Shown here in pieces: positions 21,070 to 57,306 of a DNA stretch of 64,000 nucleotides (its first letter is position 1; the number at the start of each line of letters is the position of its first letter). Made by a program: the position numbers and the translations under genes. The DNA lies in sequence record MH595538.1. One strand, written 5' to 3'. The notes under the pieces were generated by a model. It was not told where the DNA came from. It made no database searches and saw only the letters and a list, made by a program, of their open reading frames with translations.

Positions 21070-24000
21070 ATGTCTACAAGAGCACCTGCACCGTATAGTG
21101 TGCAATGGTACCAGCAGTTACTAAGAATGGCTGCAACAACCGCAGAAAAAGATAACGACGGCGATGGATTTCCTGACACAATAGGTGGCGGCGGTTCATC
21201 AATCGATCTTTACGATCAATCTAAATCATACGATGCCGGGGACTTGGTCATCCGTAACGATGACTTATTCCAGGCAAACCAAGATATTCCGGCAGGAACT
21301 AACTTCGTTATTGGCCTATCCGGCTATACCTGGCGTGAGATATCGTCATCTGTATTAGTTGCTGCTGACTTCACTGCTGGACGCAACTATCCTGAAAACG
21401 CACTTGTCATTCGCGATAACGTTTTATTGCGCGCTAAAGTAGAGATTGCAGGCGGACCATTCTCCATCAACCAATGGGAAAAGTTACAGGTAGAGAATGC
21501 CGTCAAATTGACTCTAGCTGGCTATGACGAAACCAAAACCTATGACTCTAACCAAATGATCCTGGACAACGGCATGCTTAAGTACGCCAATCAGGATGGC
21601 ATCACAGGAACATTCGATGCTTCAAAATGGGAAACCGTCACAGCCAACTTTACTTTGAAACTCAGAGATTATGTGAATAACGGAGAGTTTACAGAAGGCG
21701 AATTGGTCCTTTATGATAAGCGCATGTATAAGGCAAATTCTGATTTGTCTAATCCCGGTGATTTCGATCCAGCTGACTGGACCATTGTAGGAGGATCTGG
21801 CGGGATTCCTGCATATCTTTCATCTAATACTTACTTAGAAGGCGATGTTGTCACTCAAGGTGATTATATTTATCGCGCTAAAGAATCGGGCATCTCTGGT
21901 GCATGGAACGTAAGTAAATGGGAAGAGATTGCCGGTCGCTCTCGCATGCGTGGTGATTTTGTAACGGGCACTAGCGTTGTTTATAAAGCTTCAGATGTCG
22001 TCTTCCACGAAGGACAGTTATGGAAAGCAAATTCCACTATCACTGGACCAGAGGACTTTAATGTAGGTACGTCTGGCGCAACATGGAGCTCTCTGTCTCG
22101 TAAAGGATCAATCACTCCATATTTCACTGACCATTTCTATGTAAAAGGCGATCATGTAATTTATGATCGTCGCATCTGGTCTGCTAAAGACTCTAAACTT
22201 CACGGTGCGTGGAAAGAAGAAGAGTGGGATTTTGTTGCGGATGTTGATATCATTCTTAATGGATATTCGGCAGCACGCAAGTATTTCTCTGGCAACCTTA
22301 TTCGCGTTGGCAAGAAGATCTATTCTTGTCGAATAGACATCGAACCAAAAGCATTCGATCTCGATGATTGGGAAGATGTTTCAGGCGTGATGCAGGGCGA
22401 GCATGATAGTACTCGTGCTTATGAAAAAGATGTGATTGTCATTAAGAATAATCGCTTCTATCGCGCTAACGGCAATATCCCTAAAAACACTAACTTCTCT
22501 GAAGGTACGTCGGGAACTCAGTTCACTGAGATTTCTCCTCCGGCAAATCCTAGTGCTCCTGACTGGGCAGACGGGGTAACTTACGCTCGATTTGATCTAG
22601 TCATCAATGAGGGCACGCTATTCCGCTGTACAACAGAACATACGGCAGATGGTTCTTTTGATGCATCTAAGTTCACCTCGTTGAAAGCAGATGCTGCCGC
22701 AGTTGTTGCTGAATTTGAAACTGGGGTAAACTACGTCAAGGAGCAATTAATTGTTTCAGCCGGCACCTTATGGCGAGCACGCAAAGCGATTACGAACTCT
22801 ACGGCGGACGATGGTCCAGAAGGAGCTAACTCAGCGACTAACTGGCAAGCCGTATCCTTGACTTACATCAATATCTCTGATCATAGCGCCACAACTTATC
22901 GTCAGAATGAATTGACAGTTAAGAATGGTAAACTGTATCGTGCGAATAGAAACATAGATTCTGCAATCGCGTTTAGCCTCGATGACTGGGATCCTATTTC
23001 AGAAGAGACGCTGGTAGTTAAGGAGTTCTCTGATAGCGATACCTATAAGAAAGATCAGATTGTTCATCGTAACGAGCTTCTTTATATTGCCGTGTCAGAT
23101 CTGACCGCTGGCGCATGGGATGATTCCAATTGGATGAGCGTTAATCCGCGCAATCCATGGAGAGGAAACTTCTCTAGCTCGGGAGTCTATCAAGTCGATG
23201 ACATGGTCGTTCACGAACAGTCTCTCTGGCGTTCAACAGCCGCTACTGATGGCGAAGTATTCAGCACGAATAACTGGGAGCGTGTTAGTGGCAATATTGG
23301 CGCAAGAACATGGACTAGTGGAACTACTTTCCATAAAGGCGATTTCGTTACCAACGACAAAAAGCTTTACGTGGCAAATAGTCGATTCACAGCTACTTCG
23401 ACATTCAGTGATAGTAACCTGACTCTAGTCGGAGATTTTCAGACGACGATTGAAGACTACTCAAACTCTGAGACCTATAAGGTTAAAGATCTCGTGATTC
23501 ATGCCGGTGCAATCTGGAAATGTGAGCAAGACATCGATACTGCTGAAACCTTCGATGCGAATAAATGGAAGATGATTGCTAGAGTCAAAGCCATTGTTTC
23601 GGCGCATGATTCCACTCTAGCGTATGACGAAGGCGAGCAAGTTATTTACGATAACAAGCTTTATATTGCAACAAAAGATCTTGCAGTTAATACAGCCTTT
23701 GACGCTGATTCCGGAGACTGGCTATTGGTATCTAGTGACGCAGTGGTTACTGAAGCCTGGGAAGCAACAACCGCAGTGACTTCAGGCGAAGTAAGATTCG
23801 TTAACGGCGTCCGTATGAAGTCTCGCTCGGCGAGAACAACCGGCGGCACTTTAGATGATACTGAGTTATCTAACTGGGTTCTAGAGGCGGTTACGTCCAG
23901 TAACAAAGCAACGCTGACATGGGATGTTGCGAAGGTGATTACCCCTGGTATGCTTATCGACCTAGACGGAAAGATATATGAGGCGAATGGCACGCTAGTT

Positions 24001-24201
24001 AATGGCTCAGCATTGACTACTGAAACTGACCTTCCATCTAATGACATTGGGGTTGTTAAAGCGCTAGGTTATCGCTTTAAACTCAATGGCTTTGATGTCA
24101 CCAGTGATGTCTCTGCAGGCACCGATTCATCCAGAATGAAGTTTGCTACAGTCCATATCGATAAAGGCGATAAGATTGAGGTCTTACCTCCGGTCGTTTA
24201 A
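21070..24201 (+). CDS. Putative virion fibre/adhesin with about 19 CBM5/12-like repeats (N-module A)
   Basis: About 19 tandem 45-50-aa units of the pattern (W/Y/F)....Y..GD.V......Y.A......F....W, counted by eye. N-terminus APAPYSVQW...AEKDNDGDGFPD. Confidence 0.7.
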   Translation: MSTRAPAPYSVQWYQQLLRMAATTAEKDNDGDGFPDTIGGGGSSIDLYDQSKSYDAGDLVIRNDDLFQANQDIPAGTNFVIGLSGYTWREISSSVLVAADFTAGRNYPENALVIRDNVLLRAKVEIAGGPFSINQWEKLQVENAVKLTLAGYDETKTYDSNQMILDNGMLKYANQDGITGTFDASKWETVTANFTLKLRDYVNNGEFTEGELVLYDKRMYKANSDLSNPGDFDPADWTIVGGSGGIPAYLSSNTYLEGDVVTQGDYIYRAKESGISGAWNVSKWEEIAGRSRMRGDFVTGTSVVYKASDVVFHEGQLWKANSTITGPEDFNVGTSGATWSSLSRKGSITPYFTDHFYVKGDHVIYDRRIWSAKDSKLHGAWKEEEWDFVADVDIILNGYSAARKYFSGNLIRVGKKIYSCRIDIEPKAFDLDDWEDVSGVMQGEHDSTRAYEKDVIVIKNNRFYRANGNIPKNTNFSEGTSGTQFTEISPPANPSAPDWADGVTYARFDLVINEGTLFRCTTEHTADGSFDASKFTSLKADAAAVVAEFETGVNYVKEQLIVSAGTLWRARKAITNSTADDGPEGANSATNWQAVSLTYINISDHSATTYRQNELTVKNGKLYRANRNIDSAIAFSLDDWDPISEETLVVKEFSDSDTYKKDQIVHRNELLYIAVSDLTAGAWDDSNWMSVNPRNPWRGNFSSSGVYQVDDMVVHEQSLWRSTAATDGEVFSTNNWERVSGNIGARTWTSGTTFHKGDFVTNDKKLYVANSRFTATSTFSDSNLTLVGDFQTTIEDYSNSETYKVKDLVIHAGAIWKCEQDIDTAETFDANKWKMIARVKAIVSAHDSTLAYDEGEQVIYDNKLYIATKDLAVNTAFDADSGDWLLVSSDAVVTEAWEATTAVTSGEVRFVNGVRMKSRSARTTGGTLDDTELSNWVLEAVTSSNKATLTWDVAKVITPGMLIDLDGKIYEANGTLVNGSALTTETDLPSNDIGVVKALGYRFKLNGFDVTSDVSAGTDSSRMKFATVHIDKGDKIEVLPPVV

Positions 24202-24204
24202 TAT

Positions 24205-24220
24205 GAGGGCTTCGGCCCTC
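24205..24220 (+). terminator. UUCG hairpin (terminator or processing stem)
   Basis: GAGGGC-TTCG-GCCCTC with a weak T-tract. Confidence 0.5.
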
Positions 24221-24257
24221 TCTTAACCTATCAGATCAAAATTAAAGAGGTTTTCAA

Positions 24258-25865
24258 ATGGGACCAAATCAAAGTCAAATCCGTGACTTACTTAAGGCTG
24301 ATGTCGCAGCTGCTAATGCCGCTACTGCCCAAGGAAAAGTATGTTACATTGTCTCACTAAAGGGATGGTTCGTTGGTACAGCTGGCAGTAAGTCCGCTAA
24401 TAACATCGATGTCGTCGATTCAGCAGATGATGGCTTTTACTGGGCTTCTACAGGAGGCAGTGGCCTACTGAAAGGACAGTGGAATCAGTCTGGCGTATAT
24501 CGCGACAATGTCTATGTCACGCATAGAAACATTCTATGGCGGTCTACTAAAGATCTAACTGGTGCAAATACAGAGCCTTCGTTTACTAATGACGATTGGG
24601 CAGCAGAAGCTACTGATGATAATATCTATAGTTATGATAAGACTGAGACTTATATTGCCGGAACCACGTTCCGCATCGAAGATCGTCTATATCGTTTAAC
24701 GACAGATTATGACGGAACAGAAATAGGCGATCAGAAAGAACATGCTGAACAGGTTACATCTGGCGTACTTGCTAAACTGGGCAGTGCTGTTCCTATTCTT
24801 TCTGATTTCAATCCGGCATACACTTACTTCAAGGACGAGTTTGTTTTCTATAATCGCTCCCTATATCGCTGTAAGAAATCATCAACAAAAGCAGCTTTCA
24901 GCACCGAAAACTGGGAGTTGCTATGGGATCCCCAAGTAGCCCACTTAAGCTGGGATCACGTTCCTATTACTGAGGGTGAGCTTAGAATCTTTGGCAATGC
25001 GATCTTGAAAGCTAAGTTGAGTAAAACCGACGAGTACGAAGGCTCAGTGACTAAACCTCCGCTCAGTGACTATGAGTTCTATGATCAACTCAAAATTGAA
25101 TCATGGAGTTCAGGCAGCAAGGACCTGATTACAGGAATGGTTTATACTGACGGCATAGGGTCGACATGGCGCGGGAATGTCGATGGCAGTGAACTAGTTG
25201 AAACTGTCGCTTATGCTGATCGCGCGGATAAATCCATTCTTATGTCGGTTGGCTGTGAAATTACAGACTGGTCGCCGAGTACGAAAAAGTCCGTCGCTAA
25301 AGGACAGAAATTTAAATACAATAATGCTATCATGCGTTCTACCACTACTCACTTAGAAGCAGATACTGTATCTAAACCTAGTGAGCAAGGAGCCGGAGTT
25401 TATGTATTTGAAAGCCATCATCCCGAAGTAAGTCTTAATAAGCTCATCAAGGCCTCTGACCTTTCAGTGAGTAATGCAGTCGCATCAACAGTCTACTTGT
25501 CTCCGGATCAGCACGGTAATATTTACGGAACGGTTTATCGCGTTTACTTTGGTCAATTGACTGATGACCTGACCGAAATTGTAACTGGCATGGGTACAGT
25601 CAAGCTCATTAATTCCAGTTTTGAGACCTCAGTATGGGTGTCCGAAGATAGAGGCAGCACAACCGCCAACTATCGAGAGGTACATTCAGGAGTGAACTGG
25701 CCATCAGATCCAGTGTTCCGTGTCCGAGCTATTGTTGATCTCACATCCGGAGAAACAGCAAAGATTAAGGTACAGCAAGGTAAGTCAGTCCGCGTAGAAT
25801 CTGGATGGATTGATTTCACTAGTACGAATTCGGCACTTAAAGATACTGGCGATATCATTAACTAA
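24258..25865 (+). CDS. Putative fibre protein with a tailspike-like N-domain and about 6 CBM5/12-like repeats
   Basis: N-terminal LLKA...GKVCYI...ANNIDVV...GFYW resembles tailspike N-domains. Repeats such as DFNPAYTYFKDEFVFYNRSLYRC...W. Confidence 0.6.
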   Translation: MGPNQSQIRDLLKADVAAANAATAQGKVCYIVSLKGWFVGTAGSKSANNIDVVDSADDGFYWASTGGSGLLKGQWNQSGVYRDNVYVTHRNILWRSTKDLTGANTEPSFTNDDWAAEATDDNIYSYDKTETYIAGTTFRIEDRLYRLTTDYDGTEIGDQKEHAEQVTSGVLAKLGSAVPILSDFNPAYTYFKDEFVFYNRSLYRCKKSSTKAAFSTENWELLWDPQVAHLSWDHVPITEGELRIFGNAILKAKLSKTDEYEGSVTKPPLSDYEFYDQLKIESWSSGSKDLITGMVYTDGIGSTWRGNVDGSELVETVAYADRADKSILMSVGCEITDWSPSTKKSVAKGQKFKYNNAIMRSTTTHLEADTVSKPSEQGAGVYVFESHHPEVSLNKLIKASDLSVSNAVASTVYLSPDQHGNIYGTVYRVYFGQLTDDLTEIVTGMGTVKLINSSFETSVWVSEDRGSTTANYREVHSGVNWPSDPVFRVRAIVDLTSGETAKIKVQQGKSVRVESGWIDFTSTNSALKDTGDIIN

Positions 25866-26012
25866 CCTATCTCTCTGCTGGCTACTGCCAGCAGAGAATA
25901 GCAAATCTTTTAGTGCTTGTGCCACGGAAGGTGCAGCAAACGTATTAACACGGATGTACTGGTCCCCGGAGGGACCAGTATGCGCTTTTATATTTTTCAA
26001 AAGGAAAGGACT
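25866..26012 (+). ncRNA. Candidate structured leader or small RNA with three hairpins
   Basis: 11-bp stem at 25872-25897, late motif at 25904-25913, GU-rich stem at about 25914-25938, 10-bp stem at 25957-25980 followed by a T-rich run. Confidence 0.3.
25904..25913 (+). promoter_or_regulatory. Candidate late promoter motif AATCTTTTAG
   Basis: Identical 10-mer at 39226. Confidence 0.5.
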
Positions 26013-27644
26013 ATGACTGGACCAGCTCCATATAGCCTTCAATGGCATAAACAAATTGCAAAAAGAGCAGCCTCTACTGCCGAACGAGATCATGACGATG
26101 ATGGTTTTCCAGATGATTTAGGATCGGAAGGACAGACGCTCCCGCCTGGCGTCGAGTTTAGACCAGGTGCGGAAGAAGGCATTCTGGAGATTTGGGATAC
26201 TTCGGATTCTGACAATGCCGTATTGATAGGTTCTATTTCCAGAGATGTTTCTTATTTTAGAAACACAGTAGAAACAGGGTCGGCCTCCTATAAGTTCGGC
26301 GGCAAACATACTTTAGGCTCTGCTGGCGAACAGGCAGGTTTCCTTAACTTGATTTCTTTGATCTTCTATGCGCCTTCTATTTGGGAAGGAACAAGTCAAG
26401 ACGGCACTTCATTGTTTTTGTCAAGACGAAGAATTCATGGTAAACGAGGCACTTACATATCAGAGCCAAATGGATATAAGAACTTCTTTGTTGACTATGA
26501 TATGATCCGCACTCCTCCGGTTAACATGGTTGCCTATAGTGCAAGCTCTGTGATTGAAAGCTATGCCGGGGAAGTGGAGCTGCATGTATTTCAGGGCGGT
26601 GAAGAAATCAGTGCCATGACGGGTAATGTCATCAGTGATGGTAATTCACTAACGAAGCTAGATTTTAAATATCCGCTTTATTTAGAAGCCGATGTGCCAA
26701 TACGTTATGTGCTTACTAAACCCGACGGTACAATAATCCGAGCTAAAGCAGACAATAGCGTCGACGAAAAGGCTTATTACGAAGCGGAGTATCGCACCTG
26801 GAAGGAAATACAGCCCGTCATTGGCGAAGAGATCGTTAAAGAGAGTATTGATTATATTAATAATGTTCATTACATCACTGATACCACCGCAGGTCCAATC
26901 ACGCTGTCTGCAGAATCAACAACCGATCTGCTTAACTTCAGGGTCACTACTCTAGCCATGGTAGATGCGACTAATAAGGTTATTGTTAATCTCGGTACAG
27001 CAGGCAACTTTGAGATTGTACATCCTAATGCATCTTATTCGTTTCTTAAGGACGATGATAAGTGGTGTGTCCTGAATGAGATCACTGGGGAGTCAGTGGA
27101 GATGTCGGGTACCGATAAGACTTCAACTGATAATAAGGATTTCTTTTCAGGCGGTGCGCAAGCATCAGGAGATACGGTTGTATCGGGAGAATTGGCCGAG
27201 TCGGATGCCAGTCCTGTTGTCGCCAGTCTAACTGCTGATGCATGGACTGATCTTAAGTTCACGACAGTAGCTGAAACTATTACCGACAAACCCGCTGATC
27301 TAAGTCAAGTTTTATGGACAAGCGATAAATTTAATTTATCTCAATTAGCAAAAGGCGACAGTGTCGAAATAGAAGTATCATTTACTGTAACGCCTAACGT
27401 GAATAATGCCAGTATCGATTTAAGATTTGTACATACAGAAGACTCCTCGGTAAATGAAGAATTCAATATTGGGCGTTTAACAGAAGGTGCCGGAGAGGAT
27501 TACAATCTAAAAGCATCCTTTGTTAAATCCATCAATCATGATGATGCATTGACTGATGGCATTCAGATTCAAGTTAAGTCTACGCAGGCAGCTTCCGCTT
27601 CGCTAGAACAGATCGTATTCACACTGAACAGAAGGAGTGAATAA
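26013..27644 (+). CDS. Putative virion protein (N-module A, internal DTTAGPITL gp9-like motif, C-terminal beta-sandwich)
   Basis: Start moved to ATG 26013 (AGGA RBS). MTGPAPYSLQW...AERDHDDDGFPD. Confidence 0.65.
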   Translation: MTGPAPYSLQWHKQIAKRAASTAERDHDDDGFPDDLGSEGQTLPPGVEFRPGAEEGILEIWDTSDSDNAVLIGSISRDVSYFRNTVETGSASYKFGGKHTLGSAGEQAGFLNLISLIFYAPSIWEGTSQDGTSLFLSRRRIHGKRGTYISEPNGYKNFFVDYDMIRTPPVNMVAYSASSVIESYAGEVELHVFQGGEEISAMTGNVISDGNSLTKLDFKYPLYLEADVPIRYVLTKPDGTIIRAKADNSVDEKAYYEAEYRTWKEIQPVIGEEIVKESIDYINNVHYITDTTAGPITLSAESTTDLLNFRVTTLAMVDATNKVIVNLGTAGNFEIVHPNASYSFLKDDDKWCVLNEITGESVEMSGTDKTSTDNKDFFSGGAQASGDTVVSGELAESDASPVVASLTADAWTDLKFTTVAETITDKPADLSQVLWTSDKFNLSQLAKGDSVEIEVSFTVTPNVNNASIDLRFVHTEDSSVNEEFNIGRLTEGAGEDYNLKASFVKSINHDDALTDGIQIQVKSTQAASASLEQIVFTLNRRSE

Positions 27645-28789
27645 TGACTTTTAAAGTTACCTATGGTGATTTAAAAACCATTGTTAAATCAGGAGATGCT
27701 TCTTTTGAATTGACAGAATCCACGCACGTTATTGAAGATGCTGGCAGCAGTAAGATATCCATCCAGAATAAAATTTCTGGTAAGTACGAGATGAAAGAAG
27801 TTGCCATCATCGATTTTGTTGATGTCAATGATGCGACCTTCGCCAGCAGTTACAGTGATTTCTTAACCAAGATATGGAAGAATGGCATCAGTAAAGATAA
27901 GATTGAAAACTTCGATGATGCCGTTAGAGATGTAGCTGGGAGCGGCAGCGTGGTCATGCCCGCAGCAGAGACGGACGGAGCGCCTAGTGCGGCAGCTGTA
28001 TCTCCTTTGTCTGGATTAGCCTATTCTGAATTAGCAGAACAAACAATTCAGGATGTTATCATCAAGACATTCTATCCTGCGACAGTCCCTCCCCAGCCAG
28101 CGCCTACGATATGGTTTACAGATCCTGGCGTGGACGTTGTTTCTGTTGAAGCAGGCACTAACTTCACTGATCAAAAGAGATTCGATTTTGACTTAGGTGC
28201 CAGTCAAGGCTGGACTAATGGACGGTTAAGTCTTGACAGTAGTTTTATCATCACGACTATTGATCTTGATTTAAAAGGAAATCTCGGCGGCAGCGTCAAT
28301 GACGTCGTGACTGATCATGTCTTTACAATACACGGTTACTATGAGGAAGGTCTAGTGCCTAATGATAGTTATGGAAACCCAGCGCCAGGTTCTCAGTTAC
28401 CGACAGGTGAAGTAACCGATTCATTTACTGTACGTCCTTATTGGATGCAATACACGATTGCCGAATCGGACAATGACATTTCTCTTAGCGGGGCAGATAG
28501 TGCTGCTAACAGAATGACAATTGATGGTTTAACAACTACTGATAATCAAGGCCCTTTGTTGTCTTTCGCTAATCTGACGGTTAAAGCGGGTAAGAAACAC
28601 ATCATTCTTACCCCGCAACCAGTCTCAACAATCAATGCGATAAGTGCAGGATTCCCTGTAAACGTAGGTTCTATCAGCGGGCCATTCCCTGTAGATAACG
28701 TGGCAGGTACAGGCAATAAGGACTATTATAAAATTGTCTTTGATGGCCAAGCTCTTGATTATACGTTAGATAGCGTAACAATTAGCTAA
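27644..28789 (+). CDS. Putative virion protein
   Basis: 381 aa, T/S/D-rich beta content, IKTFYPAT motif of a type I recall in phage structural gene pairs. Start overlaps the upstream stop. Confidence 0.55.
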   Translation: MTFKVTYGDLKTIVKSGDASFELTESTHVIEDAGSSKISIQNKISGKYEMKEVAIIDFVDVNDATFASSYSDFLTKIWKNGISKDKIENFDDAVRDVAGSGSVVMPAAETDGAPSAAAVSPLSGLAYSELAEQTIQDVIIKTFYPATVPPQPAPTIWFTDPGVDVVSVEAGTNFTDQKRFDFDLGASQGWTNGRLSLDSSFIITTIDLDLKGNLGGSVNDVVTDHVFTIHGYYEEGLVPNDSYGNPAPGSQLPTGEVTDSFTVRPYWMQYTIAESDNDISLSGADSAANRMTIDGLTTTDNQGPLLSFANLTVKAGKKHIILTPQPVSTINAISAGFPVNVGSISGPFPVDNVAGTGNKDYYKIVFDGQALDYTLDSVTIS

Positions 28790-28798
28790 GGATGAACT

Positions 28799-30342: not shown

Positions 30343-30380
30343 AAAACAGATCAATATGAATCATATGACAAGGATGTCTT

Positions 30381-30402
30381 TTGCCTCTCTTCGGAGAGGC
30401 AA
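30381..30402 (+). terminator. Intrinsic terminator
   Basis: TTGCCTCTC-TTCG-GAGAGGCAA with a T-tract shortly after. Confidence 0.7.
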
Positions 30403-30448
30403 GGGATATTTTTTGTCTAACTGTTGATGACTAAATAAGGAACGATAT

Positions 30449-31921: not shown

Positions 31922-31926
31922 ATAAG

Positions 31927-33393: not shown

Positions 33394-33402
33394 GGAGTTA
33401 GC

Positions 33403-44559: not shown

Positions 44560-44570
44560 ATACTTAAATG

Positions 44571-44580: not shown

Positions 44581-44581
44581 A

Positions 44582-44617: not shown

Positions 44618-44634
44618 AATACGGAGATAAGCAA

Positions 44635-44782: not shown

Positions 44783-44786
44783 TGAT

Positions 44787-44810
44787 TACAGGGGTCATTT
44801 GGCCCCTGTA
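44787..44810 (+). terminator. Intrinsic terminator
   Basis: TACAGGGGTC-ATTT-GGCCCCTGTA followed by TATTTT. Confidence 0.7.
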
Positions 44811-44856
44811 TATTTTAATACCTTTTTGAAATTAAATGACAATAAAGGAGTTACTT

Positions 44857-48856: not shown

Positions 48857-50347
48857 ATGGCAGAATATACAGTAGTAGATTTAGCAGCAGCTAAATCACA
48901 GAATGCTAATGATGGAGACCTCATAAAGGTTGAGTCTAATAACAACGTTTATGTTGTTAGGAGTCCCTTAGATGCACCATCAAAAGGCATCGTCAATGAC
49001 GCAGGCAAAGTACTAGTTTGGAATTCCAATCATACGATAGAAGACTCGTTTGAAGAAATTGATGCCGTTAAGAACTCAAGCTCTGGACTTGCGCCTTGGA
49101 GTGATAGCGAGACTTACGATACTGGTGATGTTGTCTATCATCAAAACAGGGTGCTTGAATGTAATGCCGATGGAATTACAGGTAACTTTAATTCTGATAA
49201 TTGGAATGTTCTAGTAGGACCTGTATATGGAGCAAATGGAAATAGGTTCACTGGGGTTAAATCAATCATTGTCGAATTTGAACAATTTCCTTCGGGTGAT
49301 TCAGGGAGTTATTTCGGAATTAAGTATTTAGAATTAAGGGATTACAACGGCACTTTGGTTAATCCATCTGCGGTATCAAGTTCGAGCACAAGCCATGACA
49401 TGCATAATAATACGAACTATTATCCTGAAGCTATCATGCTTAGCAGCATGCATCAGGATGGCAGTACAGAAAGAGCATTATGGGTGTCCGGTGTTGCGGG
49501 AGAAAATAGAAAAACCACGAGAATATGTTTTGTACTCAGTTCACCCATTGACATCCATACGATGAAAATACGCACCAGTACCAGTGCAGGCCAATGTCCG
49601 GCTAAAGTTAGGGTATATGGCAGTGCTATCAATCCTCGATCAGCAGGATTAGTGGATTTCATAAGAGAACCATGGCTCAAGTTAATGGGCGGCTATGACT
49701 TTATTGATAATGATACTCCGGCAAGTAATACTGAAATAGATTTAGTGATGGAGAGTGGAGTTAATTCCTTGCCTCGATATAGAAGCAGGGAGGTAGATGT
49801 ATGGTCAATGCATAAAACGGATAGTCCTAACCGAGGAGGAGGTGACCACATCATGGCTTCTTCTGTCGGATATCTAGAAAGAGGTAAAAAAATAGCTGCC
49901 GCATTTTGGTTAACAAGCCACGGAAGAAATGGAGATCTTTCCTCTTTCAGCATGATGAATGATACTAATGCAGATGGTACTTACGAAACTGTCTATGGTG
50001 CTTTGCAGTCTGGCCTAGAACCAACCGCTGATTACCGATTCTTAACCAGTGGAATAACTCCCGGAAGCGTAAACGTTAATTCTAACATGGGTAGGGTTCT
50101 AGATCTCAGGGACAAAAATATTATTGTTCCTAATTTCGACGTATATGGACTTATCAGCCACCAGGACCATAATGGAACATTCAGCAATAACAGTGCATAT
50201 GGTCCAGATGCGACCCATAATACAATACCTGGGCATCAAGATGCGAGTTACTATAGTAATCAGGACGATTGGGTGCAAGGAGTTTCTCGAGCTACAACAA
50301 ACAGCTTCGGAACTAGTGCATTCATATCATTCCTATATGAGGATTAA
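48857..50347 (+). CDS. Putative fibre protein: N-module B, CBM-like repeat, discoidin-like domain, variable tip
   Basis: Collinear with 50351 up to DF(I/L)REPW(L/I)KLMG and ...LPRY, then diverges. Confidence 0.65.
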   Translation: MAEYTVVDLAAAKSQNANDGDLIKVESNNNVYVVRSPLDAPSKGIVNDAGKVLVWNSNHTIEDSFEEIDAVKNSSSGLAPWSDSETYDTGDVVYHQNRVLECNADGITGNFNSDNWNVLVGPVYGANGNRFTGVKSIIVEFEQFPSGDSGSYFGIKYLELRDYNGTLVNPSAVSSSSTSHDMHNNTNYYPEAIMLSSMHQDGSTERALWVSGVAGENRKTTRICFVLSSPIDIHTMKIRTSTSAGQCPAKVRVYGSAINPRSAGLVDFIREPWLKLMGGYDFIDNDTPASNTEIDLVMESGVNSLPRYRSREVDVWSMHKTDSPNRGGGDHIMASSVGYLERGKKIAAAFWLTSHGRNGDLSSFSMMNDTNADGTYETVYGALQSGLEPTADYRFLTSGITPGSVNVNSNMGRVLDLRDKNIIVPNFDVYGLISHQDHNGTFSNNSAYGPDATHNTIPGHQDASYYSNQDDWVQGVSRATTNSFGTSAFISFLYED

Positions 50348-50350: not shown

Positions 50351-51835
50351 ATGGCGAGTTATGAAGTGAATACACTCAATGATGCTAAAGCACAAAGTGC
50401 CTCAGAAGGAGACCAGATTACAGTAAAAGACACAGGTAGTGTTTACATTGTAAAAGATCCTTTAGATGCCTCTACAGCGTCAGTAAAAAGAAACGATGGT
50501 AATGTGTTAGTGTTCTCTAGTGCAATTACTGTCACTAATAATTCAACCTCAATTAAAGACCTTAAGGAAAACCCTGTAGGGTCTGACATCGATGATTACG
50601 ATACCTCTAAGGCTTATAAGACTGGAGACATTGTTTATCATGATAATCGTTTATTAGAAGCGAATAAAGATACCTCAGGCACCTTTACAGAAGATGACTG
50701 GGATATTAAGGTAGGGCCTCCGTTTACCGTCGTGAACAATCGATTCACAGGTGTGAAGACTCTAATTGCAGAGTTTAAGTCTTTCACTCCAGAATCCGGA
50801 TATTATGGCATGCGTTATCTTGAAATAAAGAATGCTGCTGGAGAAATAGTTAATCCGGATGCAATCGAATACTTCATATCTTCTCCTGTTATTACAACAA
50901 ATACAGGCGGAGGTGATGTTCCAGACACTATTCTCAAATTTAAAAATCCCGATGTGGATAACAGCAGTTCTAGAGCTCTCTGGCCAGGATCGTCCAGTTT
51001 AGCGAAGAGATCGGTAACAAGGATGGTTATTGTGTTTAACAGCCCGATTGACGTTCATTCTATGCGCGTCATGCTTGCTAAAAACACTAATCAGACTGCT
51101 GAATACATTCGTGTCTTCGGAAGCGCGGTTGATACAGGGGCCTTAGGGGCTGTTGATTTCTTGAGAGAACCATGGATTAAATTAATGGGGAGTTTTTACA
51201 GCACTGACATTAATAATCCTGGGAATAGCGAATGGGCTGATTTGGAGATGGAAGATGGCGGGACGTTACCGAGATATTATAATCATGTCAAAATAGCGGA
51301 TCCGGTAGGTTATCTTACACCCACAGAATATGCAGGAGGTAGAAGCTTCTTAAGTGCCCACCGCGGATATATTGACCCTGGTAAGAAACTTGCTGGAGTA
51401 ATATGGACCGCCGAAGGGACAGTACTGGCTGACTTTAGAAAGGCCGCAGCAAGTTTCACTAACGCACTCACTGTAGGATCCGCCTTTGTTCAGCCTCTTA
51501 AGGAACCTATATGCTATGTCTTCGATGGAAACAGATATGATGATCCATCCCCGTTAGGCTCGGCCGAGCCGTCTGCGTTTCTATTAGACTTTAGGTCTAA
51601 TAATTTCATTACTCCGGCTACAAGCTATGTTCTCGTTTCTACGGTAGATGCAAATGGTGACCCTATGCAGGCTGTACAGTATTCAAGTGTATCAACAGTG
51701 GGTTTTGATGAAAACCGCGGCGGTTACGAAAATAAAACCTATTATACTAATGATGCAATTGCTGATAATTCCTCGTTTACATTATCCAGCAGTTATGGCA
51801 ATTCCGCAAACGTCATGGTTATTTATGAAGATTGA
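50351..51835 (+). CDS. Paralog of 48857
   Basis: NRFTGVK, Y(F/Y)G..YLE, PID(I/V)H.M and DFLREPWIKLMG shared. Confidence 0.65.
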   Translation: MASYEVNTLNDAKAQSASEGDQITVKDTGSVYIVKDPLDASTASVKRNDGNVLVFSSAITVTNNSTSIKDLKENPVGSDIDDYDTSKAYKTGDIVYHDNRLLEANKDTSGTFTEDDWDIKVGPPFTVVNNRFTGVKTLIAEFKSFTPESGYYGMRYLEIKNAAGEIVNPDAIEYFISSPVITTNTGGGDVPDTILKFKNPDVDNSSSRALWPGSSSLAKRSVTRMVIVFNSPIDVHSMRVMLAKNTNQTAEYIRVFGSAVDTGALGAVDFLREPWIKLMGSFYSTDINNPGNSEWADLEMEDGGTLPRYYNHVKIADPVGYLTPTEYAGGRSFLSAHRGYIDPGKKLAGVIWTAEGTVLADFRKAAASFTNALTVGSAFVQPLKEPICYVFDGNRYDDPSPLGSAEPSAFLLDFRSNNFITPATSYVLVSTVDANGDPMQAVQYSSVSTVGFDENRGGYENKTYYTNDAIADNSSFTLSSSYGNSANVMVIYED

Positions 51836-51837: not shown

Positions 51838-51861
51838 CTAAAGGGGCTAGAGTCCCTTTAG
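51838..51861 (+). terminator. Intrinsic terminator
   Basis: CTAAAGGGGC-TAGA-GTCCCTTTAG followed by TTTTTT. Confidence 0.7.
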
Positions 51862-51909: not shown

Positions 51910-52689
51910 ATGGCACTAACCGAAGTTAACACACTCGCCGACGCAAAGGCATTGTCCTTTCCGCTCGAAGATGCAATTCTAGTGAAAGATACAAATAAAA
52001 GATACAGAGCAGTTCCAATTTTGGATGTTAATGGAACCGCTGTGAAAACAGACAATGCTTCTTATATGCTGCAAGAAATAGTTAAGGATTCCGACGTTTT
52101 AGTTGAAGGCATCGGCGGTACTTCCTTAGCAGGAATTGAATATGACGAAACTAAGAAAAGGCTTAAGCAAACAGAAACACCTTCTGGCGATGCTGACGAA
52201 GATCTCCAGCTCATGATTCATAGCGATATTGAAAAGCTAGGTATTGAAAGATATGAATTAGAGATCAGCATTGCTGACATACCCACAGGTAGTGCAACCT
52301 ATGGGTATAAGACCGCTCAGGCAGCCCCTGGGGAGAAATGGGGTATTATTCTCCATAGTCCTAACGCAGCGAGCACTGAAGTATATTTAGCCTTTTATGG
52401 GAATAACAATGACGCTTCATCAGGAGAGTCAATAGATGCAATAGGGGCATCTAACTATTATGATTCCGCATGGACCTATGGAAATGAAATTAAAGCCCTT
52501 TTCTATACTCGTGTTCCAATTGGCCGTGCTGATAGAACAACCAATGACCAAAAAACTAGGCTCAATATCAGGGGCTTCATGACTGTAACTGCTCAATCAG
52601 GTTATCTTTATTTTGTAAGATTTCAAAATTCCAGCATTAACTCCCTCAAGTTAATCGTTACAAAATTCACTCCAATAAATACTCTTTAA
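51910..52689 (+). CDS. Putative fibre protein with N-module B
   Basis: Start moved to ATG 51910 (GAGG RBS). EVNTLADAK...ILVKDTNKRY; YDE..KR..Q as in 40339/41443. Confidence 0.6.
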   Translation: MALTEVNTLADAKALSFPLEDAILVKDTNKRYRAVPILDVNGTAVKTDNASYMLQEIVKDSDVLVEGIGGTSLAGIEYDETKKRLKQTETPSGDADEDLQLMIHSDIEKLGIERYELEISIADIPTGSATYGYKTAQAAPGEKWGIILHSPNAASTEVYLAFYGNNNDASSGESIDAIGASNYYDSAWTYGNEIKALFYTRVPIGRADRTTNDQKTRLNIRGFMTVTAQSGYLYFVRFQNSSINSLKLIVTKFTPINTL

Positions 52690-52706: not shown

Positions 52707-54806
52707 ATGCTATCACCAAATGCTTGGGGTCTTACTAGACCTGAACCACCTGTATTTAAATTAACTGCGCCAGTGCTCGATGGTGTCGAATACAATCCTC
52801 TTGTTAGAATGTTTGAATATGAAGAGGAGCCAGCAACAGAAAGTTTACTGGACTTTCTTCCTGTTGTTCGAGTAGAAACAAGGGACGGTGTTGTTAGAGC
52901 ATCTGGTTTTAGTGCGCCTTATCTGGTTGAAGACATTAAACGCTTATGGAAGACGTCTAAGATAACTAACAATATCTTTATTGACTTATCTAGACGTTCA
53001 TTCACCTGTCATGAGTTCTTTGTTATTGAGATTATGTACATGCTCAATAAGCTATTGAACAGCCCAAAGACAAAAACCTCTAATAGTACAATTGAAAGTA
53101 TATTAGCAGGCCTTTCTGAAAATACCTGGATTTCAGAAGCTCTAGAGGCAGAGCCTTTAGAGATTGATATACATCGCCCTGAAAAGATGCTAATCGATCC
53201 TAATACAGGCAAACAGTTTACATACCTAGATGGACAAAGAGATTTCATTGTTCACTTAGCTGAGAATATGCCCAAGGCAGAAGTCAATGGCGCTATCCTA
53301 CATGCCGATCCCGGTACCGGTAAAACACTATCCGGTTATGCTACTCATCTTGCTTTTAACATGGATCTCACTATTTACAGTGTTCCATTGCCAGTAAGAA
53401 CGGATGTATGGGAAAAGACATTAAAGGAAAACTTTAAGCGCATTCCTAAATATTGGTCTTCTTCTATGCCAGGAGATCCTACAGGCAAAGAAGAAATCAT
53501 TATATGTCACTACGAGGCTCTCCCTCGCGTTCTAGCGGTGCTTAACAAGATAAAAGGTAAAAAGATAGGAGTTTGGCTAGATGAGTCTCACAACTTCGTA
53601 GAGGCGGTTTCTACACGCACACAGCGCTTCATTAAACTGGCTATTGAATCTGGAGCTATGTTTGTAGTGTGGGCATCTGGTACACCACTGAAAGCCTTGG
53701 GTAAAGAAGTTATTCCTATCCTTCAGTCTTTGGATCCTAAGCGCTTTACTCCGGCAGTGCAAGAAGCCTTCAAGAAAGTCTATGGTATGTCTACTCAGCA
53801 TGCACTGGATATTCTTAATAACCGATTAAAGCAGATCACGTTCCGTGTAGAAAAGAAAGACGTTGTTCAGATTGATAAGACCAAAAAGGATCTTTGGGTT
53901 AAACTGAGCGACGGCGATAAGTATACGCTAGAACATGTTAAGAACGAGATTACGGATTTCGTTACTGAGCAAACAAAATATTATGCAAGGCGCAAAGACG
54001 ACATTGAATATCAATGGGAAAAGTTTATGCGTGAAATTGAGCCTAAACTAACAGCCAATAAACAGGATGACTTTAAGCGATATAAGAAGTTCTGTAAAAT
54101 GATGCATACGATGTTTGATCAGGCAACCATGATCGATATCATGAAATGGTGTCGTGACTTTGAGCGCAATGAAATCTATCTAGTTCTAGATAATAAACGA
54201 CGTAAGGAGTTTAAGGAATTAGCGCCTAAGTATAAGTATATTGTTCTAGTGATTCGAGGACAAGCCTTGGGCCGAATCCTTACTCGTCGCCGTATTGATT
54301 GCTTTAAGCAATTAGCATTAAATGCCGACTACCGTCCAATCATTGATTCTGCTCGCGCTAAAACAATCTTCTTTACTTCTTATGTAGATGTCGCAAAGAC
54401 GCTTCATAAGCGCATGGAAGAAGAGGGCTATAATCCTATCTTGGTCATTGGTGAGACAAACAAAGACTTAGAACGGTTATTAGAGAGATCTCGCAGAGAC
54501 CCTGGCGTTAACCCTGTGATTGCGACATTGAAATCATTAGGTACCGGCGTACCCATGGTACACTGTAATGCAATGGTCTTTATTGATCTACCATTTAGAG
54601 ACTATCTCTATGAACAAGCCGTAGCGCGTATTGAGCGACTAGGACAGAAGTATCCAATCCTAGTTGTGCATACTATGTTAGACACTGGAGGTCTAAAGAA
54701 CTTAACTCAGCGGACTGAAGAGATCTTAAAGTGGTCTAAAGAACAAGTAGATGCGATGCTAGGCATAAATGGCGACGCTATCGATATAGAGCAGATTGCT
54801 TACTAA
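52707..54806 (+). CDS. SF2 (SNF2-like) helicase
   Basis: Walker A ADPGTGKT, Walker B WLDESH, motif III ASGTP, and C-terminal SLGTG...EQAVARIERLGQ. Confidence 0.9.
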   Translation: MLSPNAWGLTRPEPPVFKLTAPVLDGVEYNPLVRMFEYEEEPATESLLDFLPVVRVETRDGVVRASGFSAPYLVEDIKRLWKTSKITNNIFIDLSRRSFTCHEFFVIEIMYMLNKLLNSPKTKTSNSTIESILAGLSENTWISEALEAEPLEIDIHRPEKMLIDPNTGKQFTYLDGQRDFIVHLAENMPKAEVNGAILHADPGTGKTLSGYATHLAFNMDLTIYSVPLPVRTDVWEKTLKENFKRIPKYWSSSMPGDPTGKEEIIICHYEALPRVLAVLNKIKGKKIGVWLDESHNFVEAVSTRTQRFIKLAIESGAMFVVWASGTPLKALGKEVIPILQSLDPKRFTPAVQEAFKKVYGMSTQHALDILNNRLKQITFRVEKKDVVQIDKTKKDLWVKLSDGDKYTLEHVKNEITDFVTEQTKYYARRKDDIEYQWEKFMREIEPKLTANKQDDFKRYKKFCKMMHTMFDQATMIDIMKWCRDFERNEIYLVLDNKRRKEFKELAPKYKYIVLVIRGQALGRILTRRRIDCFKQLALNADYRPIIDSARAKTIFFTSYVDVAKTLHKRMEEEGYNPILVIGETNKDLERLLERSRRDPGVNPVIATLKSLGTGVPMVHCNAMVFIDLPFRDYLYEQAVARIERLGQKYPILVVHTMLDTGGLKNLTQRTEEILKWSKEQVDAMLGINGDAIDIEQIAY

Positions 54807-54814: not shown

Positions 54815-54842
54815 ATATACTGGGGCAATTGCCCCAGTATAT
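54815..54842. terminator. Bidirectional terminator (perfect 28-bp palindrome)
   Basis: ATATACTGGGGC-AATT-GCCCCAGTATAT between convergent genes. Confidence 0.85.
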
Positions 54843-54848: not shown

Positions 54849-56666
54849 TTATTCCATATCTAACATAATGCCAGAAATACCAGAGTAGCTTTCAGTACCT
54901 ACAGCGTCAAACGTAATAACAAGATCTGCGCCATTAGAACAGTCATAGTCTAAAGTACCAATGTGCTCACTGAAGTCACCGGTGAATGCACTGCCGTCAA
55001 TAGCACTCTTATAGGTCACTGTACGACTACCGTTGTCATCCGTAATCGTTGCTTGGGTAACGTAGTCATCTGCAGCTGAAGTCGTATACAGGCCTGCTAG
55101 AGAGATTGTGCCTTTGCCTGCCTTCTCAATAGTCGCTGTCATTTGACGAGTATTGACGATAAAACATCCGCCAGACAATAGGTTTGGATCCATTAGATCT
55201 TCACCATAGTCTACCCAGTCAGTATTGTTATTCAAGCGAGCTTGGTAATTACCGCCAACAGTTGCTAGTTTAAAGCGCATGCCAGGATCTAGTAATTCAG
55301 ACTTAAATGCCTTAGTGATTTGAGCATCAAAGTCAGAGCCCGCCGTAATGCCAAAGTTGTTACCTAGCTGGCGATACATAGGGCGGTTATTGATTGCTGT
55401 TTCGTTGCCGATGTTAATTAGAACACGATTAGTGTACTTAGTCGCATCAAAAGGTTCAGGCTTGATGTTTCCGTTAAGCTCTAGTTGATCAATGATGTAT
55501 TCACGTACACGATGAGAACCATTGCCATCTGGATAACCGCCATCGACTGCTTTGTAATCATCGTCATTATAGAAGTGCAAGTTATCATCATCCAATAGAT
55601 CTGGATTGTCTTTAACAAACGTGTAAAGGTCGAACACTGGACGTTGAGTATCTTCATCAAAGAACATTGGGGTTAGTTCTTTACAAAGAGGGATCAAGAA
55701 CTCATCGTTCCATGAGCCGGTATGTAGCGTCACACCTTTGTCAGGCAGAGCAGATAACTGACCTTTCGCATCTACCCAGTGCAATGAAGTGATTGCAACA
55801 TCGCCGTGTTGTTTAAGTTCAGCAATAATTTCACGAGTCAACGTATCGGCGGTGGTGCGCTGCTCTTCTGTCATGTCAGACCAAGCAGTCACTGTACCGG
55901 CTGCTCCGTCACCTACTCCGCCTGCAGAGAGATATGTGTTACAGTCGTTAAGGCCGCCAAAGAACAAGAATAGAGTCTCGCCATTTGCTAATGCGGTAGA
56001 ATCAGCAATCTGATCTTTGATGTAAGAAAGTGTTGTGCCTGGAGAAGCTTGGCTATCAAAGTTGGTGCCACGGAACGGTACTAGGTTACCGTCTTTATCG
56101 TTCCAGATGTTGTTAAGTTTGAATGTACCGTTTGTTGTACTCGCGCCAACGCCAATGATAGTGTCATAGCGTTTATGTACGGGAATTGCCGATAGTGCTT
56201 TCTTGATGGCTTGTGCTAGGATAGTGCGAGTACCGGTAGCAGAATCATCGTCATAGACAAACAGGTCTTGGATAACCGAAGCGTCATTCACAATATCCCA
56301 GTTTGCATCAACCCAAGCACCAGTATGCACTTTGTTACTTAGGTAAAGGTCACCGTCGCGATAGACAAGGTCGTCAGACAAGTAGTCCGCATTTTCATCA
56401 AACTCTTGCACGTATCCTTTGTGAGTATCCACAAGAGTCCAGTCGCCATCCGCCCATGCGGTATTAGCAGCTTGACCCGCAGGCGTGTAATATACTTCGT
56501 TATCACCACTACTGATAACCAGTTCGTTAGCAGCGTAAGTATTTGTTTGATCCCACAGTAGAATATTTTCCTGTGCGATACTACCCGGGTCGACCACTAC
56601 CCATGGCGCTACAGTAACTCCATCTACATTCTTAACGATGAGCAGAGTAATTAGATTATCGTACAT
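54849..56666 (-). CDS. SGNH/GDSL esterase with N-module C, two CBM-like repeats and a C-terminal beta-domain
   Basis: Block I IIGVGAST, block III FGGLND and block V DDDNLH. Two W/F...Y..D(E)LV repeats near the N-terminus. Confidence 0.75.
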   Translation of the reverse strand: MYDNLITLLIVKNVDGVTVAPWVVVDPGSIAQENILLWDQTNTYAANELVISSGDNEVYYTPAGQAANTAWADGDWTLVDTHKGYVQEFDENADYLSDDLVYRDGDLYLSNKVHTGAWVDANWDIVNDASVIQDLFVYDDDSATGTRTILAQAIKKALSAIPVHKRYDTIIGVGASTTNGTFKLNNIWNDKDGNLVPFRGTNFDSQASPGTTLSYIKDQIADSTALANGETLFLFFGGLNDCNTYLSAGGVGDGAAGTVTAWSDMTEEQRTTADTLTREIIAELKQHGDVAITSLHWVDAKGQLSALPDKGVTLHTGSWNDEFLIPLCKELTPMFFDEDTQRPVFDLYTFVKDNPDLLDDDNLHFYNDDDYKAVDGGYPDGNGSHRVREYIIDQLELNGNIKPEPFDATKYTNRVLINIGNETAINNRPMYRQLGNNFGITAGSDFDAQITKAFKSELLDPGMRFKLATVGGNYQARLNNNTDWVDYGEDLMDPNLLSGGCFIVNTRQMTATIEKAGKGTISLAGLYTTSAADDYVTQATITDDNGSRTVTYKSAIDGSAFTGDFSEHIGTLDYDCSNGADLVITFDAVGTESYSGISGIMLDME

Positions 56667-56724: not shown

Positions 56725-56734
56725 CTATAAGATT
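56725..56734 (-). promoter_or_regulatory. Candidate late promoter motif AATCTTATAG
   Basis: Minus-strand match upstream of the SGNH gene. Confidence 0.45.
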
Positions 56735-56763
56735 TGATTCTATAAATTATTATCTATGGACCA

Positions 56764-56773
56764 AATAGATTGA
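56764..56773 (+). promoter_or_regulatory. Candidate late promoter motif AATAGATTGA
   Basis: Identical to the 10-mer at 20954. Divergent partner of 56725. Confidence 0.45.
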
Positions 56774-56838
56774 GTAACCTTGCTGTCAAAAGGACTCGGC
56801 ATGCACAACTAAACGGATTAATCAACGAGGACGCTATT

Positions 56839-57306
56839 ATGCTAATCGAAGAACTATTCGTCAGGCTAGTGACGAGCGACAGAGAATCACAAACATTGCC
56901 GTATGTAATCGTGAGAAACCCTGTTGACTCAATTAGCATTAGACACTTTGAACCTAACAGCAATTACAAAAAGGACACGGTCTGTCTAAGGCTAGATCAA
57001 TTATACCTTTGTCTAGAGGAAGTATACGAAGACGAGTACTGGAATCCTAAAAAATGGAAAATGCTGGATCCTTTCTTATATCATGTTTACGAACATGTAG
57101 TAAACAGGGATTATCATCCAGGCAGTATCGTCTCCAAGAACGGAGATTTGTTTGTATCACAGGAATTAAATAAAGGCACCATGGACATGTCCAAATGGAA
57201 ACGTGCTCATCATCTAATGGAACTAGAGGTATGTAGCGGGCACATGAACTATGGCAATGGTGACTTTAAACAGTTTGACTTCAGCGGGATGCTGGTAAAA
57301 TTATAA
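56839..57306 (+). CDS. Small protein with an N-module C-like start and two CBM-like repeats
   Basis: Start moved to ATG 56839 (GAGG RBS). PYVIV falls at the same position as PWVVV in the SGNH gene. FEPNSNYKKD...W and YHPGSIV.KNGDLF...W repeats. Confidence 0.6.
   Translation: MLIEELFVRLVTSDRESQTLPYVIVRNPVDSISIRHFEPNSNYKKDTVCLRLDQLYLCLEEVYEDEYWNPKKWKMLDPFLYHVYEHVVNRDYHPGSIVSKNGDLFVSQELNKGTMDMSKWKRAHHLMELEVCSGHMNYGNGDFKQFDFSGMLVKL

Follow-up and report, generated by a model that had tools for sequence, protein, structure and literature searches.

A modular array of candidate fibre and adhesin genes in the jumbo Vibrio phage BONAISHI

The gene array

Vibrio phage BONAISHI is a phiKZ-like jumbo myovirus of Vibrio coralliilyticus with a genome of 288,967 bp; its particle has been published as a 120-nm head and a 190-nm contractile tail and nothing further, and its host range as V. 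coralliilyticus strains only (Jacquemot et al. 2018, PMC6207643). We analysed a window of 64,000 nucleotides (nt) of this genome, bases 124001-188000 of MH595538.1; positions below are window coordinates unless marked otherwise. Our subject is a 36-kb array of 29 genes within it, open reading frames (ORFs) 141 to 169, which match the record at 100% identity and are annotated as hypothetical except for ORF167. A preliminary description had taken about 28 of them for one virion appendage system, in which a few conserved N-termini dock exchangeable tips. One uniform system of that size is not what we find: four DNA-metabolism genes lie inside, some family assignments fail, and one family (C) reaches outside the array. 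What stands is the modular principle, with N-terminal modules (N-modules) shared among proteins that carry swappable binding domains, between phages as well as within this one.

Because ORF159, ORF161, ORF163 and ORF167 are conserved backbone, the candidate set comprises 25 of the 29 genes, covering 30.6 kb or 10.6% of the genome. The candidate proteins lack signal peptides and membrane segments, are acidic and are rich in glycine, serine, threonine and asparagine, while the four interleaved backbone proteins are basic. Families were delimited by all-against-all BLASTP and by leave-one-out profiles, in which a held-out member was sought with a profile of the others. The genes are as follows (CBM, carbohydrate-binding module; aa, amino acids).

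ORF141, 21070-24201, plus strand: family A N-module (leave-one-out E 1e-15) and at least 15 CBM5/12-like repeats, 1043 aa
ORF142, 24258-25865, plus strand: N-terminus of its own and two CBM-like repeats
ORF143, 26013-27644, plus strand: family A N-module (leave-one-out E 3e-13) and cargo conserved in Vibrio chimalliviruses
ORF144, 27644-28789, plus strand: conserved partner gene of the locus
ORF145, 28799-29587, plus strand: 68-aa N-module and short body, 262 aa
ORF146, 29584-30342, plus strand: family F, whole-length paralog of ORF157
ORF147, 30449-31921, plus strand: family D
ORF148, 31927-33393, plus strand: family D
ORF149, 33403-34521, plus strand: family E
ORF150, 34533-36110, plus strand: family E, mid domain in common with ORF152
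ORF151, 36192-37433, plus strand: singleton with tail-module-type C-terminal domain
ORF152, 37473-39146, plus strand: singleton, mid domain in common with ORF150
ORF153, 39266-40330, plus strand: family B1
ORF154, 40339-41427, plus strand: family B1
ORF155, 41443-42528, plus strand: family B1
ORF156, 42610-43251, plus strand: family A N-module (leave-one-out E 4e-8) and small body
ORF157, 43251-43985, plus strand: family F
ORF158, 44062-44532, plus strand: family C-type short N-motif and one CBM-like repeat
Remnant of a family B2 gene, 44533-44856, plus strand: 324-bp gap between ORF158 and ORF159
ORF159, 44857-45801, plus strand: non-member, DprA-like backbone gene
ORF160, 45856-46803, plus strand: family B2, with N-module, CBM-like repeat and DUF4457-like domain
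ORF161, 46836-47153, plus strand: non-member, small conserved backbone gene
ORF162, 47217-48146, plus strand: family B2 (BLASTP E 2e-42 to ORF160)
ORF163, 48164-48847, plus strand: non-member, basic, highly conserved
ORF164, 48857-50347, plus strand: family B3 (BLASTP E 2e-79 to ORF165)
ORF165, 50351-51835, plus strand: family B3
ORF166, 51910-52689, plus strand: family B4, with B1-like N-module and linker and a different body (leave-one-out E 3e-16)
ORF167, 52707-54806, plus strand: non-member, SNF2-type helicase
ORF168c, 54849-56666, minus strand: family C, with N-motif, two CBM-like repeats and body
ORF169, 56839-57306, plus strand: family C, short form

Short N-terminal modules define gene families

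Families A and B emerged from the profile tests as first described. All three family A members (ORF141, ORF143, ORF156) were retrieved when held out, at E 4e-8 to 1e-15; in their common module of ~40 aa, an Asp-rich loop of DxDxDG type comes after a helix-like stretch, and the module heads bodies unrelated to one another. Family B (ORF153, ORF154, ORF155, ORF160, ORF162, ORF164, ORF165, ORF166) has a module of ~55 aa, and eight of its eight members were retrieved (E 8e-7 to 8e-19; 8e-7 to 1e-16 for the B1 triplet ORF153-155). Members of B1, B2 and B3 resemble their own subgroup over most of their length, and similarity between B2 and B3 extends across ~250 aa. Profile-profile alignment with hhalign limits the part common to B1 and B3 to the N-module (about 50 columns, 94% probability), and that common to B1 and ORF166 to the N-module and linker (97.9% over 113 columns).

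The remaining assignments fared less evenly. Family D reduces to the pair ORF147/148, joined by a short N-motif (phmmer E 8e-4) and a mid-region BLASTP match (E 3e-7), and family E to the pair ORF149/150, which have about 200 N-terminal aa in common (BLASTP E 5e-23). Leave-one-out profiles joined the N-terminus of ORF151 neither to D nor that of ORF152 to E, as had been proposed; ORF152 and ORF150 do have a mid domain in common (BLASTP E 2e-13). ORF146 and ORF157 are related (BLASTP E 9e-9, leave-one-out E 6e-10), by near full-length paralogy rather than by an N-module, and each stands last in a cassette opened by a family A gene. For family C the first leave-one-out test, made with the first 80 aa, failed because that region matches the ORF141 repeats. 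The short N-motif of the family retrieved ORF158 (E 8e-5), ORF229, a protein of phage pir03 and the ORF169 of a sister phage (run SRR17165166), all at rank 1, and hhalign aligned ORF168c with ORF169 over ~125 aa (93% probability). BLAST bridges ORF238 to ORF229, the giant protein of pir03, ORF169 and ORF168c. With ORF238, ORF229 and the pir03 proteins as its support, family C holds up as a real family, but one that extends beyond the interval. Both BONAISHI genes in this chain lie outside the window: ORF229 (MH595538 226086-227921) is a paralog of ORF168c at 45% identity, and ORF238 (MH595538 235508-237232) joins a family C N-region to a body resembling glycoside hydrolase family 18 (GH18, the chitinase family; sub-threshold).

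Clustering by N-terminus alone across five phages upheld the families. A proposed link between the B N-module and the N-terminus typical of ORF142 and phage sm033 was rejected (hhalign 0.6%). Searched exhaustively as a profile among 1.84 billion representative proteins, the family B module occurred in BONAISHI and one sister phage only.

Could these N-terminal similarities be no more than leftovers of tandem duplication, in ordinary diverging paralogs without a separable module? The whole-length likeness within F, B1, B2 and B3 suits such an origin, and D and E are merely pairs. It does not explain why B1 meets B3 in the N-module alone, and ORF166 in N-module and linker alone, or why the A-module stands before unrelated bodies. 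The recombinants between phages described below (sm033, pir03, Yong XC31) largely refute the idea, and we regard it as improbable.

Bodies carry CBM5/12-like repeats and a C1q-like knob

CBM-like repeats had been noted across families A, B and C, and we found them in all three and in ORF142 besides. ORF141 matches Pfam CBM_5_12 at 94.5 bits against a gathering cut-off of 26.2 and contains at least 15 copies (about 15-18). The other copies were recognised only with a profile built from ORF141: two each in ORF142 and ORF168c, and one each in ORF158, ORF160, ORF162, ORF164 and ORF165. Vibrio phages K354, K406 and K408 have the ORF141 repeat in proteins annotated as tail fibres. ORF141 also matches phrog_972 (E 4e-18), through the repeat motif alone, and ORF142 matches phrog_5073 (E 5e-4); none of the remaining array proteins had a match in the PHROG tail category. 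The ORF141 repeats thus resemble both the repeat region of T4-type proximal tail fibres (phrog_972) and CBM5/12 modules, for which chitin binding is putative here, and the string may act as a shaft instead of as a row of binding sites. No CBM-like repeat was found in phiKZ gp145/146, the large genes that follow the endolysin there.

Structure prediction with AlphaFold2 gave models of two family B proteins. The ORF165 model has low overall confidence (mean predicted local distance difference test, pLDDT, 49) and is unreliable past residue ~125, while its N-module and CBM-like domain are confident. Residues ~80-125 (pLDDT 75-84) match solved chitin-binding domains (2d49, template modelling score, TM, 0.65) and superpose on the CBMs of Vibrio deacetylases with a root-mean-square deviation of about 2 Å over 44 aa; the E-values of these matches are weak because the domain is small. 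The single-chain model of ORF154, from 13 aligned sequences, is of medium confidence (mean pLDDT 68). It predicts an N-domain at residues 1-55 (pLDDT 80-91) of one strand, a helix and four strands, a disordered linker at residues 58-107 (pLDDT <50) and a beta-sandwich at residues 120-352. The independent ORF165 model has the same N-domain topology.

Searched against the PDB with Foldseek, the predicted ORF154 sandwich matched EDA-A1, C1QL2, the C1q domain of Caprin-2, C1ql1 and the N-domain of the TNF-like lectin BC2L-C (target-normalised TM 0.56-0.60, E 2e-4 to 5e-4, probability 1.0), and also the receptor-binding ends of phage lambda gpJ and TM4 gp23. The search of BFVD gave 398 matches (E<=0.001), and below the BONAISHI paralogs those with names were mostly phage tail fibre, host-specificity or C1q-domain proteins. 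The C-terminal domain of ORF154 is accordingly modelled as a TNF/C1q-like jelly roll, as found at phage fibre tips. The link to C1q/TNF and BC2L-C is one of fold, at 7-15% identity, and a trimer is predicted by analogy; three adjacent, co-conserved paralog genes (ORF153-155) recall the three chains of C1q. One BFVD match is a 525-aa entry of the BONAISHI series, of the same length as ORF150. This match lends some support to the earlier proposal of a knob in both B and E, for which sequence similarity is faint (hhalign 9.9%).

Other searches returned little. The B N-module profile, ORF145, ORF150 and ORF165 yielded nothing meaningful in sequence searches of the PDB, and NCBIfam gave nothing for the array proteins. 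Residues 219-412 of ORF151 have a match at the C-terminal end of a 613-aa protein, which Colwellia phage 9A encodes within its tail gene module.

Modules and genes are exchanged at a shared hot spot

In all relatives examined, the locus around the endolysin, the DprA-like gene, ORF163 and the helicase forms a hot spot. In sm033 it encodes a 315-aa protein with an A-like N-module and CBM repeats and a 2351-aa CBM_5_12 protein annotated as a tail fibre. An ORF142-type N-terminus stands before an ORF144-type body in a further protein, of 357 aa, and another, of 2282 aa, starts with 68 aa of ORF145 type. At the end stands a GH18-like protein whose ortholog in BONAISHI is the body of ORF238, encoded outside the window. 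The N-terminal 70 aa of ORF142 match the N-terminus of the protein at sm033 34061-35134 (E 2e-5), whose body is ORF144-like. The ORF145 module is 48% identical to the start of the sm033 2282-aa protein (E 2e-20), and identity falls to ~20% past the module.

Phage pir03 has almost nothing between endolysin and helicase. Past the helicase it encodes a 548-aa and a 6417-aa protein, both with family C-type N-termini; the gene for the latter (pir03 25604-44857) contains about 50 DUF285 repeats and occupies the position of BONAISHI ORF168c/ORF169. The family C N-region thus heads GH18-like as well as DUF285 cargo. In Yong XC31 (19923-25850) the ORF143 homolog is split into genes of 348 and 173 aa, between which stand three paralogs of 307-316 aa with an N-terminus common to them, and an ORF144 homolog follows. 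ORF144 is 32% identical over its full length to the Yong XC31 protein and 28% identical to the C-terminal part of the sm033 protein; scans of IMG/VR and JGI metagenomes found no relatives of its family, and word-indexed homolog searches with ORF143 and ORF144 found nothing beyond the query itself.

The sister phage retains the ORF153-155 triplet one-to-one and in the same order, but after the helicase, where an ortholog of ORF169 follows; it has a single ORF164-type gene after ORF163, and in a further protein, longer than 1084 aa, a C-type N-terminus is combined with Big_13 and DUF285. Its array orthologs are 28-39% identical to those of BONAISHI, against 51-68% for neighbouring backbone genes. 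Across the relatives, all cargo at the locus is of extracellular adhesion type: CBM_5_12, GH18-like, Big_13 (Ig-like), DUF285 and an EPTP-like propeller. As the sequences of sm033, pir03 and Yong XC31 read, N-modules recombine with different bodies between phages. The comparison of cassettes called for by the preliminary description thus finds modules shuffled and genes gained and lost at this locus.

Backbone genes, a decaying gene and expression signals

The backbone genes ORF159, ORF161, ORF163 and ORF167 are conserved in pir03, sm033, Yong XC31 and the sister phage and encode basic proteins. Array genes are inserted between them: ORF160 between ORF159 and ORF161, ORF162 between ORF161 and ORF163, and ORF164-166 between ORF163 and ORF167. 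ORF163 (isoelectric point 9.6) is the most conserved gene of the locus, at 68-77% identity in pir03, the sister phage and Yong XC31, and matches nothing in Pfam, PHROG, NCBIfam or PDB. ORF167 has Pfam SNF2-rel_dom and Helicase_C domains and a phrog_62 match; 38-51% identical in the relatives, it anchors the locus in all of them. ORF159 matches phrog_768 (E 2e-30). Only its residues ~130-311 are DprA-like; the ~130 aa at its start have no counterpart in the homologs of pir03 and sm033, which are both about 200 aa long. The full-length protein contains 11 cysteines.

One cassette had been described as decaying, and so it is. In the 324-bp gap at 44533-44856, tblastn found matches to the final ~36 aa of ORF162 (E 5e-6) and ORF160 (E 3e-5), and a 9-aa match to the start region lies in another frame than the end match. 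The remnant is one broken ORF160/162-type gene with one large internal deletion and its ends in two frames. A run of TA dinucleotides and AT-rich short repeats also lie within this gap.

Cassettes had further been described as bounded by hairpins and late motifs, of which the hairpins are the sounder part. Terminator-like sites number 28, against 13.7±4.4 and 12.2±3.9 in shuffled sequences, about a twofold excess, and the strong ones are all intergenic. GC-rich examples are:

39156-39177, plus strand: cassette-bounding hairpin
25955-25982: hairpin
42532-42557: hairpin
43988-44009: hairpin
44787-44810: hairpin
51838-51861: hairpin
54815-54842: hairpin
57316-57335: hairpin

The late motif named in the preliminary description, TAGATTGA, was rejected as a general signal, since it precedes only three array genes. 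So was AATCTTTT, which stands upstream of ORF140, ORF143, ORF153 and ORF156, yet also of unrelated genes. Sigma-70-like promoters are not enriched.

Another motif, strongly conserved, is TCTATAT[ATC]A[CT]C, with 23 copies upstream of genes genome-wide, extended conservation and a position mostly 35-85 nt before start codons. These are likely the early promoters of BONAISHI. The motif resembles the core of the phiKZ early promoter. None of the 23 sites falls inside the array, the nearest lying upstream of ORF133 and ORF170. Promoter-like sites in the window are:

about 9696: early-type site upstream of ORF122
about 12282: early-type site upstream of ORF127
about 14982: early-type site upstream of ORF133
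about 57351: early-type site upstream of ORF170
21034-21043, plus strand: late-like motif ATTAAAACAT, 35 nt upstream of ORF141

The core of the late-like motif, TTAAAACA, stands upstream of ORF141 and of the sheath, major capsid, portal (ORF121) and ORF104 genes, and six of its 30 copies in the genome lie in upstream gaps, which account for 2.7% of the sequence. Because the motif is short and its significance is lost once a mismatch is allowed, late expression of the array genes is suggested and no more.

Two neighbouring features lie before the array. A 117-aa ORF at 20409-20762, between ORF140 and ORF141, is absent from the GenBank annotation; pir03 and sm033 have similar-sized genes at this position, without detected similarity. 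ORF133 (15060-16100), behind one of the early-type promoters, encodes a long coiled coil with weak XhlA- and crescentin-like matches and a YadA-like membrane-anchor domain (27 bits, cut-off 22.7), an anchor of autotransporter-adhesin type within a phage. The N-terminus of its sm033 relative (sm033 20380-22410) is signal-peptide-like.

Comparison with known phage fibre systems

Adjacent paralogs with a common N-terminus have a precedent within the same virus family. In phiKZ, gp131, gp133, gp134 and gp135 share an N-terminal domain, form a mixed hexameric fibre base and differ in their C-termini, with a distal binding domain (PMC13250141). The BONAISHI array repeats this layout and differs in having at least five module types instead of one. 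The phiKZ gp131-type N-domain has no BLAST match among the array proteins, and hhalign gave at most 2% for all array families. Its counterparts in BONAISHI are ORF300c and ORF295c (E 8e-21 to 1e-8 with the N-domains of gp131, gp133, gp134 and gp135) and ORF299c (E 0.002). They lie, with the gp130 homolog ORF301, 100 kb from the array, and the rest of the canonical peripheral-baseplate set is also present, as gp128 (ORF120c) and gp139 (ORF119c), with the portal at ORF121. The array is therefore additional to the standard fibres.

A parallel in working is DUF7941. In phage Goslar, ten DUF7941 proteins were detected in virions by mass spectrometry; in some, an N-terminal module precedes carbohydrate-binding, glycoside-hydrolase or leucine-rich repeat (LRR) domains, and a 'fibre cloud' at the peripheral baseplate, with a role in first host contact, has been proposed for them, the collar filaments being separate (doi 10.64898/2026.04.21.720040). 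The family is reported as general to chimalliviruses. Like it, the array has many paralogs per genome, encoded near the endolysin and the portal region, and the ORF154 model repeats the build of N-terminal globular domain, disordered linker and C-terminal globular domain. This predicted likeness is one of working, not of membership. Virion presence and filaments have been shown for Goslar and would be putative for the BONAISHI array.

The Pfam profile DUF7941 (PF25613) matched eight of eight controls (phiKZ gp126, gp127 and gp143; Goslar gp22, gp23, gp31, gp33 and gp34) at E 2e-3 to 2e-63, and no array protein nor any of ORF116-140 at E<=0.01. A local hidden Markov model of the family gave E>1 across the whole BONAISHI proteome, and profile-profile probabilities for the array were at most 0.4%. 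The BONAISHI genome appears to lack DUF7941, and by these comparisons the array belongs neither to it nor to the gp131-like family. Beside the gp128 homolog, BONAISHI has the gp139 homolog ORF119c (DUF7208) instead of gp126/127.

CBA120-type tailspikes form a branched multi-fibre system of the same kind as that of Klebsiella phage phiKp24. Such systems (phiKp24, PMC9700779; RaK2/K64-1) resemble the array in their many receptor-binding proteins with conserved N-terminal attachment and exchangeable distal parts. Their cargo is mostly beta-helical depolymerases on N-terminal adaptors of known fold; Pfam, PHROGs and NCBIfam found no depolymerase or adaptor domain in the array, which has knobs and CBM-like beads instead, and the sole trace is a sub-threshold beta-helical trimerisation match in ORF145 (18 bits, cut-off 27). 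The array had been described as larger in scale than known branched systems; the claim holds for the number of families, not for the principle, which has been described before (PMC13250141; doi 10.64898/2026.04.21.720040).

Location and function of the array proteins

We propose, at odds only a little better than even (roughly 0.55), that the array comprises about 25 accessory virion fibre or adhesin genes, specific to the lineage and subject to fast turnover. The case for it is indirect: it draws on the types of domain, on fold matches, on modules that recombine between phages, on composition and promoter class, and on rapid turnover and precedent. Each protein would run from a short N-module (families A, B and C and the ORF142 and ORF145 types) through a flexible or repeat-built spacer, CBM5/12-like beads among them, to a carbohydrate- or surface-binding tip such as a TNF/C1q-like knob. 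We infer that the genes are expressed late, together with the structural proteins. The N-modules would keep the proteins together as homo- or hetero-oligomers and fasten them to the virion, with the peripheral baseplate as the probable site. The tips would bind host envelope glycans and/or chitin-like surfaces and so raise the chance of first contact, and the ORF153-155 triplet may form a mixed trimeric knob in the manner of C1q's three chains.

Several observations weigh against this proposal. The published micrograph description has only a head and a tail (PMC6207643), and the narrow host range argues against many independent host receptors. With the canonical fibre set elsewhere in the genome, extra fibres are not required. 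Searches of Pfam, PHROGs, PDB and NCBIfam related no array protein to solved or annotated virion proteins beyond domain level. The array genes are interleaved with DNA-metabolism genes, and ORF229 and ORF238 sit among nucleotide-metabolism genes. The late-like motif is short, and within the window WTTAAAACAW shows no enrichment at one mismatch; the ORF154 and ORF165 models are of medium and low confidence. The N-modules of family B are no better conserved than their cargo, unlike classical anchors, and the earlier casting of N-modules as docking parts loses ground accordingly.

Much of this would suit the main rival, in which the array proteins stay off the particle as soluble lectins or glycan-active proteins, freed at lysis or intracellular, whose N-termini only oligomerise or fold. 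Homology that stops at domains, N-modules that evolve as fast as their cargo, a canonical fibre set encoded elsewhere, and genes placed among DprA-like, helicase and nucleotide-metabolism genes, with scattered family C members and a GH18-like domain, are all what it would lead one to see. It accounts less well for a knob fold that occurs mainly at phage fibre tips, for an ORF145 N-module conserved while the body varies from 262 to 2282 aa, the classical anchor pattern, and for a late-like motif common to ORF141 and the capsid, sheath and portal genes. The analogous Goslar paralogs with CBM, GH and LRR domains were found in virions by mass spectrometry (doi 10.64898/2026.04.21.720040). We consider soluble proteins a possible but doubtful explanation.

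The site of attachment matters too, and sequence is silent on it. Display of CBM or Ig-like domains on heads is known for other phages. Decoration of the Hoc type, or whisker-type collar filaments, on the head or neck would keep the proteins on the virion and away from the baseplate, and Goslar does have separate collar filaments (doi 10.64898/2026.04.21.720040). The fold matches, however, are to tail-fibre tips and not to head decoration proteins, and the closest analogues in the virus family, the gp131 paralogs and DUF7941, sit at the peripheral baseplate; a head or neck location therefore seems to us quite unlikely.

More speculatively, BONAISHI and its sister lineage might have replaced the DUF7941 'fibre cloud' by a kit of their own, unrelated to it, in which at least five tether modules carry chitin-binding-like beads and C1q-like knobs, a three-gene heterotrimeric lectin knob among them. 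We hold this only tentatively. If true, modular virion display would have been invented independently within one virus family, and the particle would adhere not only to its host but also to chitinous or mucus surfaces inhabited by vibrios.

What stands out is the number of module families, their apparent independence from DUF7941 and gp131, and their extreme rarity: a family B module in only two phages among 1.84 billion representative proteins makes a clear case of very recent gene birth and death. If the array proteins are on the particle as we propose, BONAISHI would spend about a tenth of its coding capacity (30.6 kb) on exchangeable binding appendages, and, with modules unrelated to both recently described phiKZ-like families, modular fibre kits would have arisen more than once within the virus family. 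The array would then also offer new small tether and knob domains for structural study, and could help explain how large marine vibriophages find their hosts on chitin or coral mucus.

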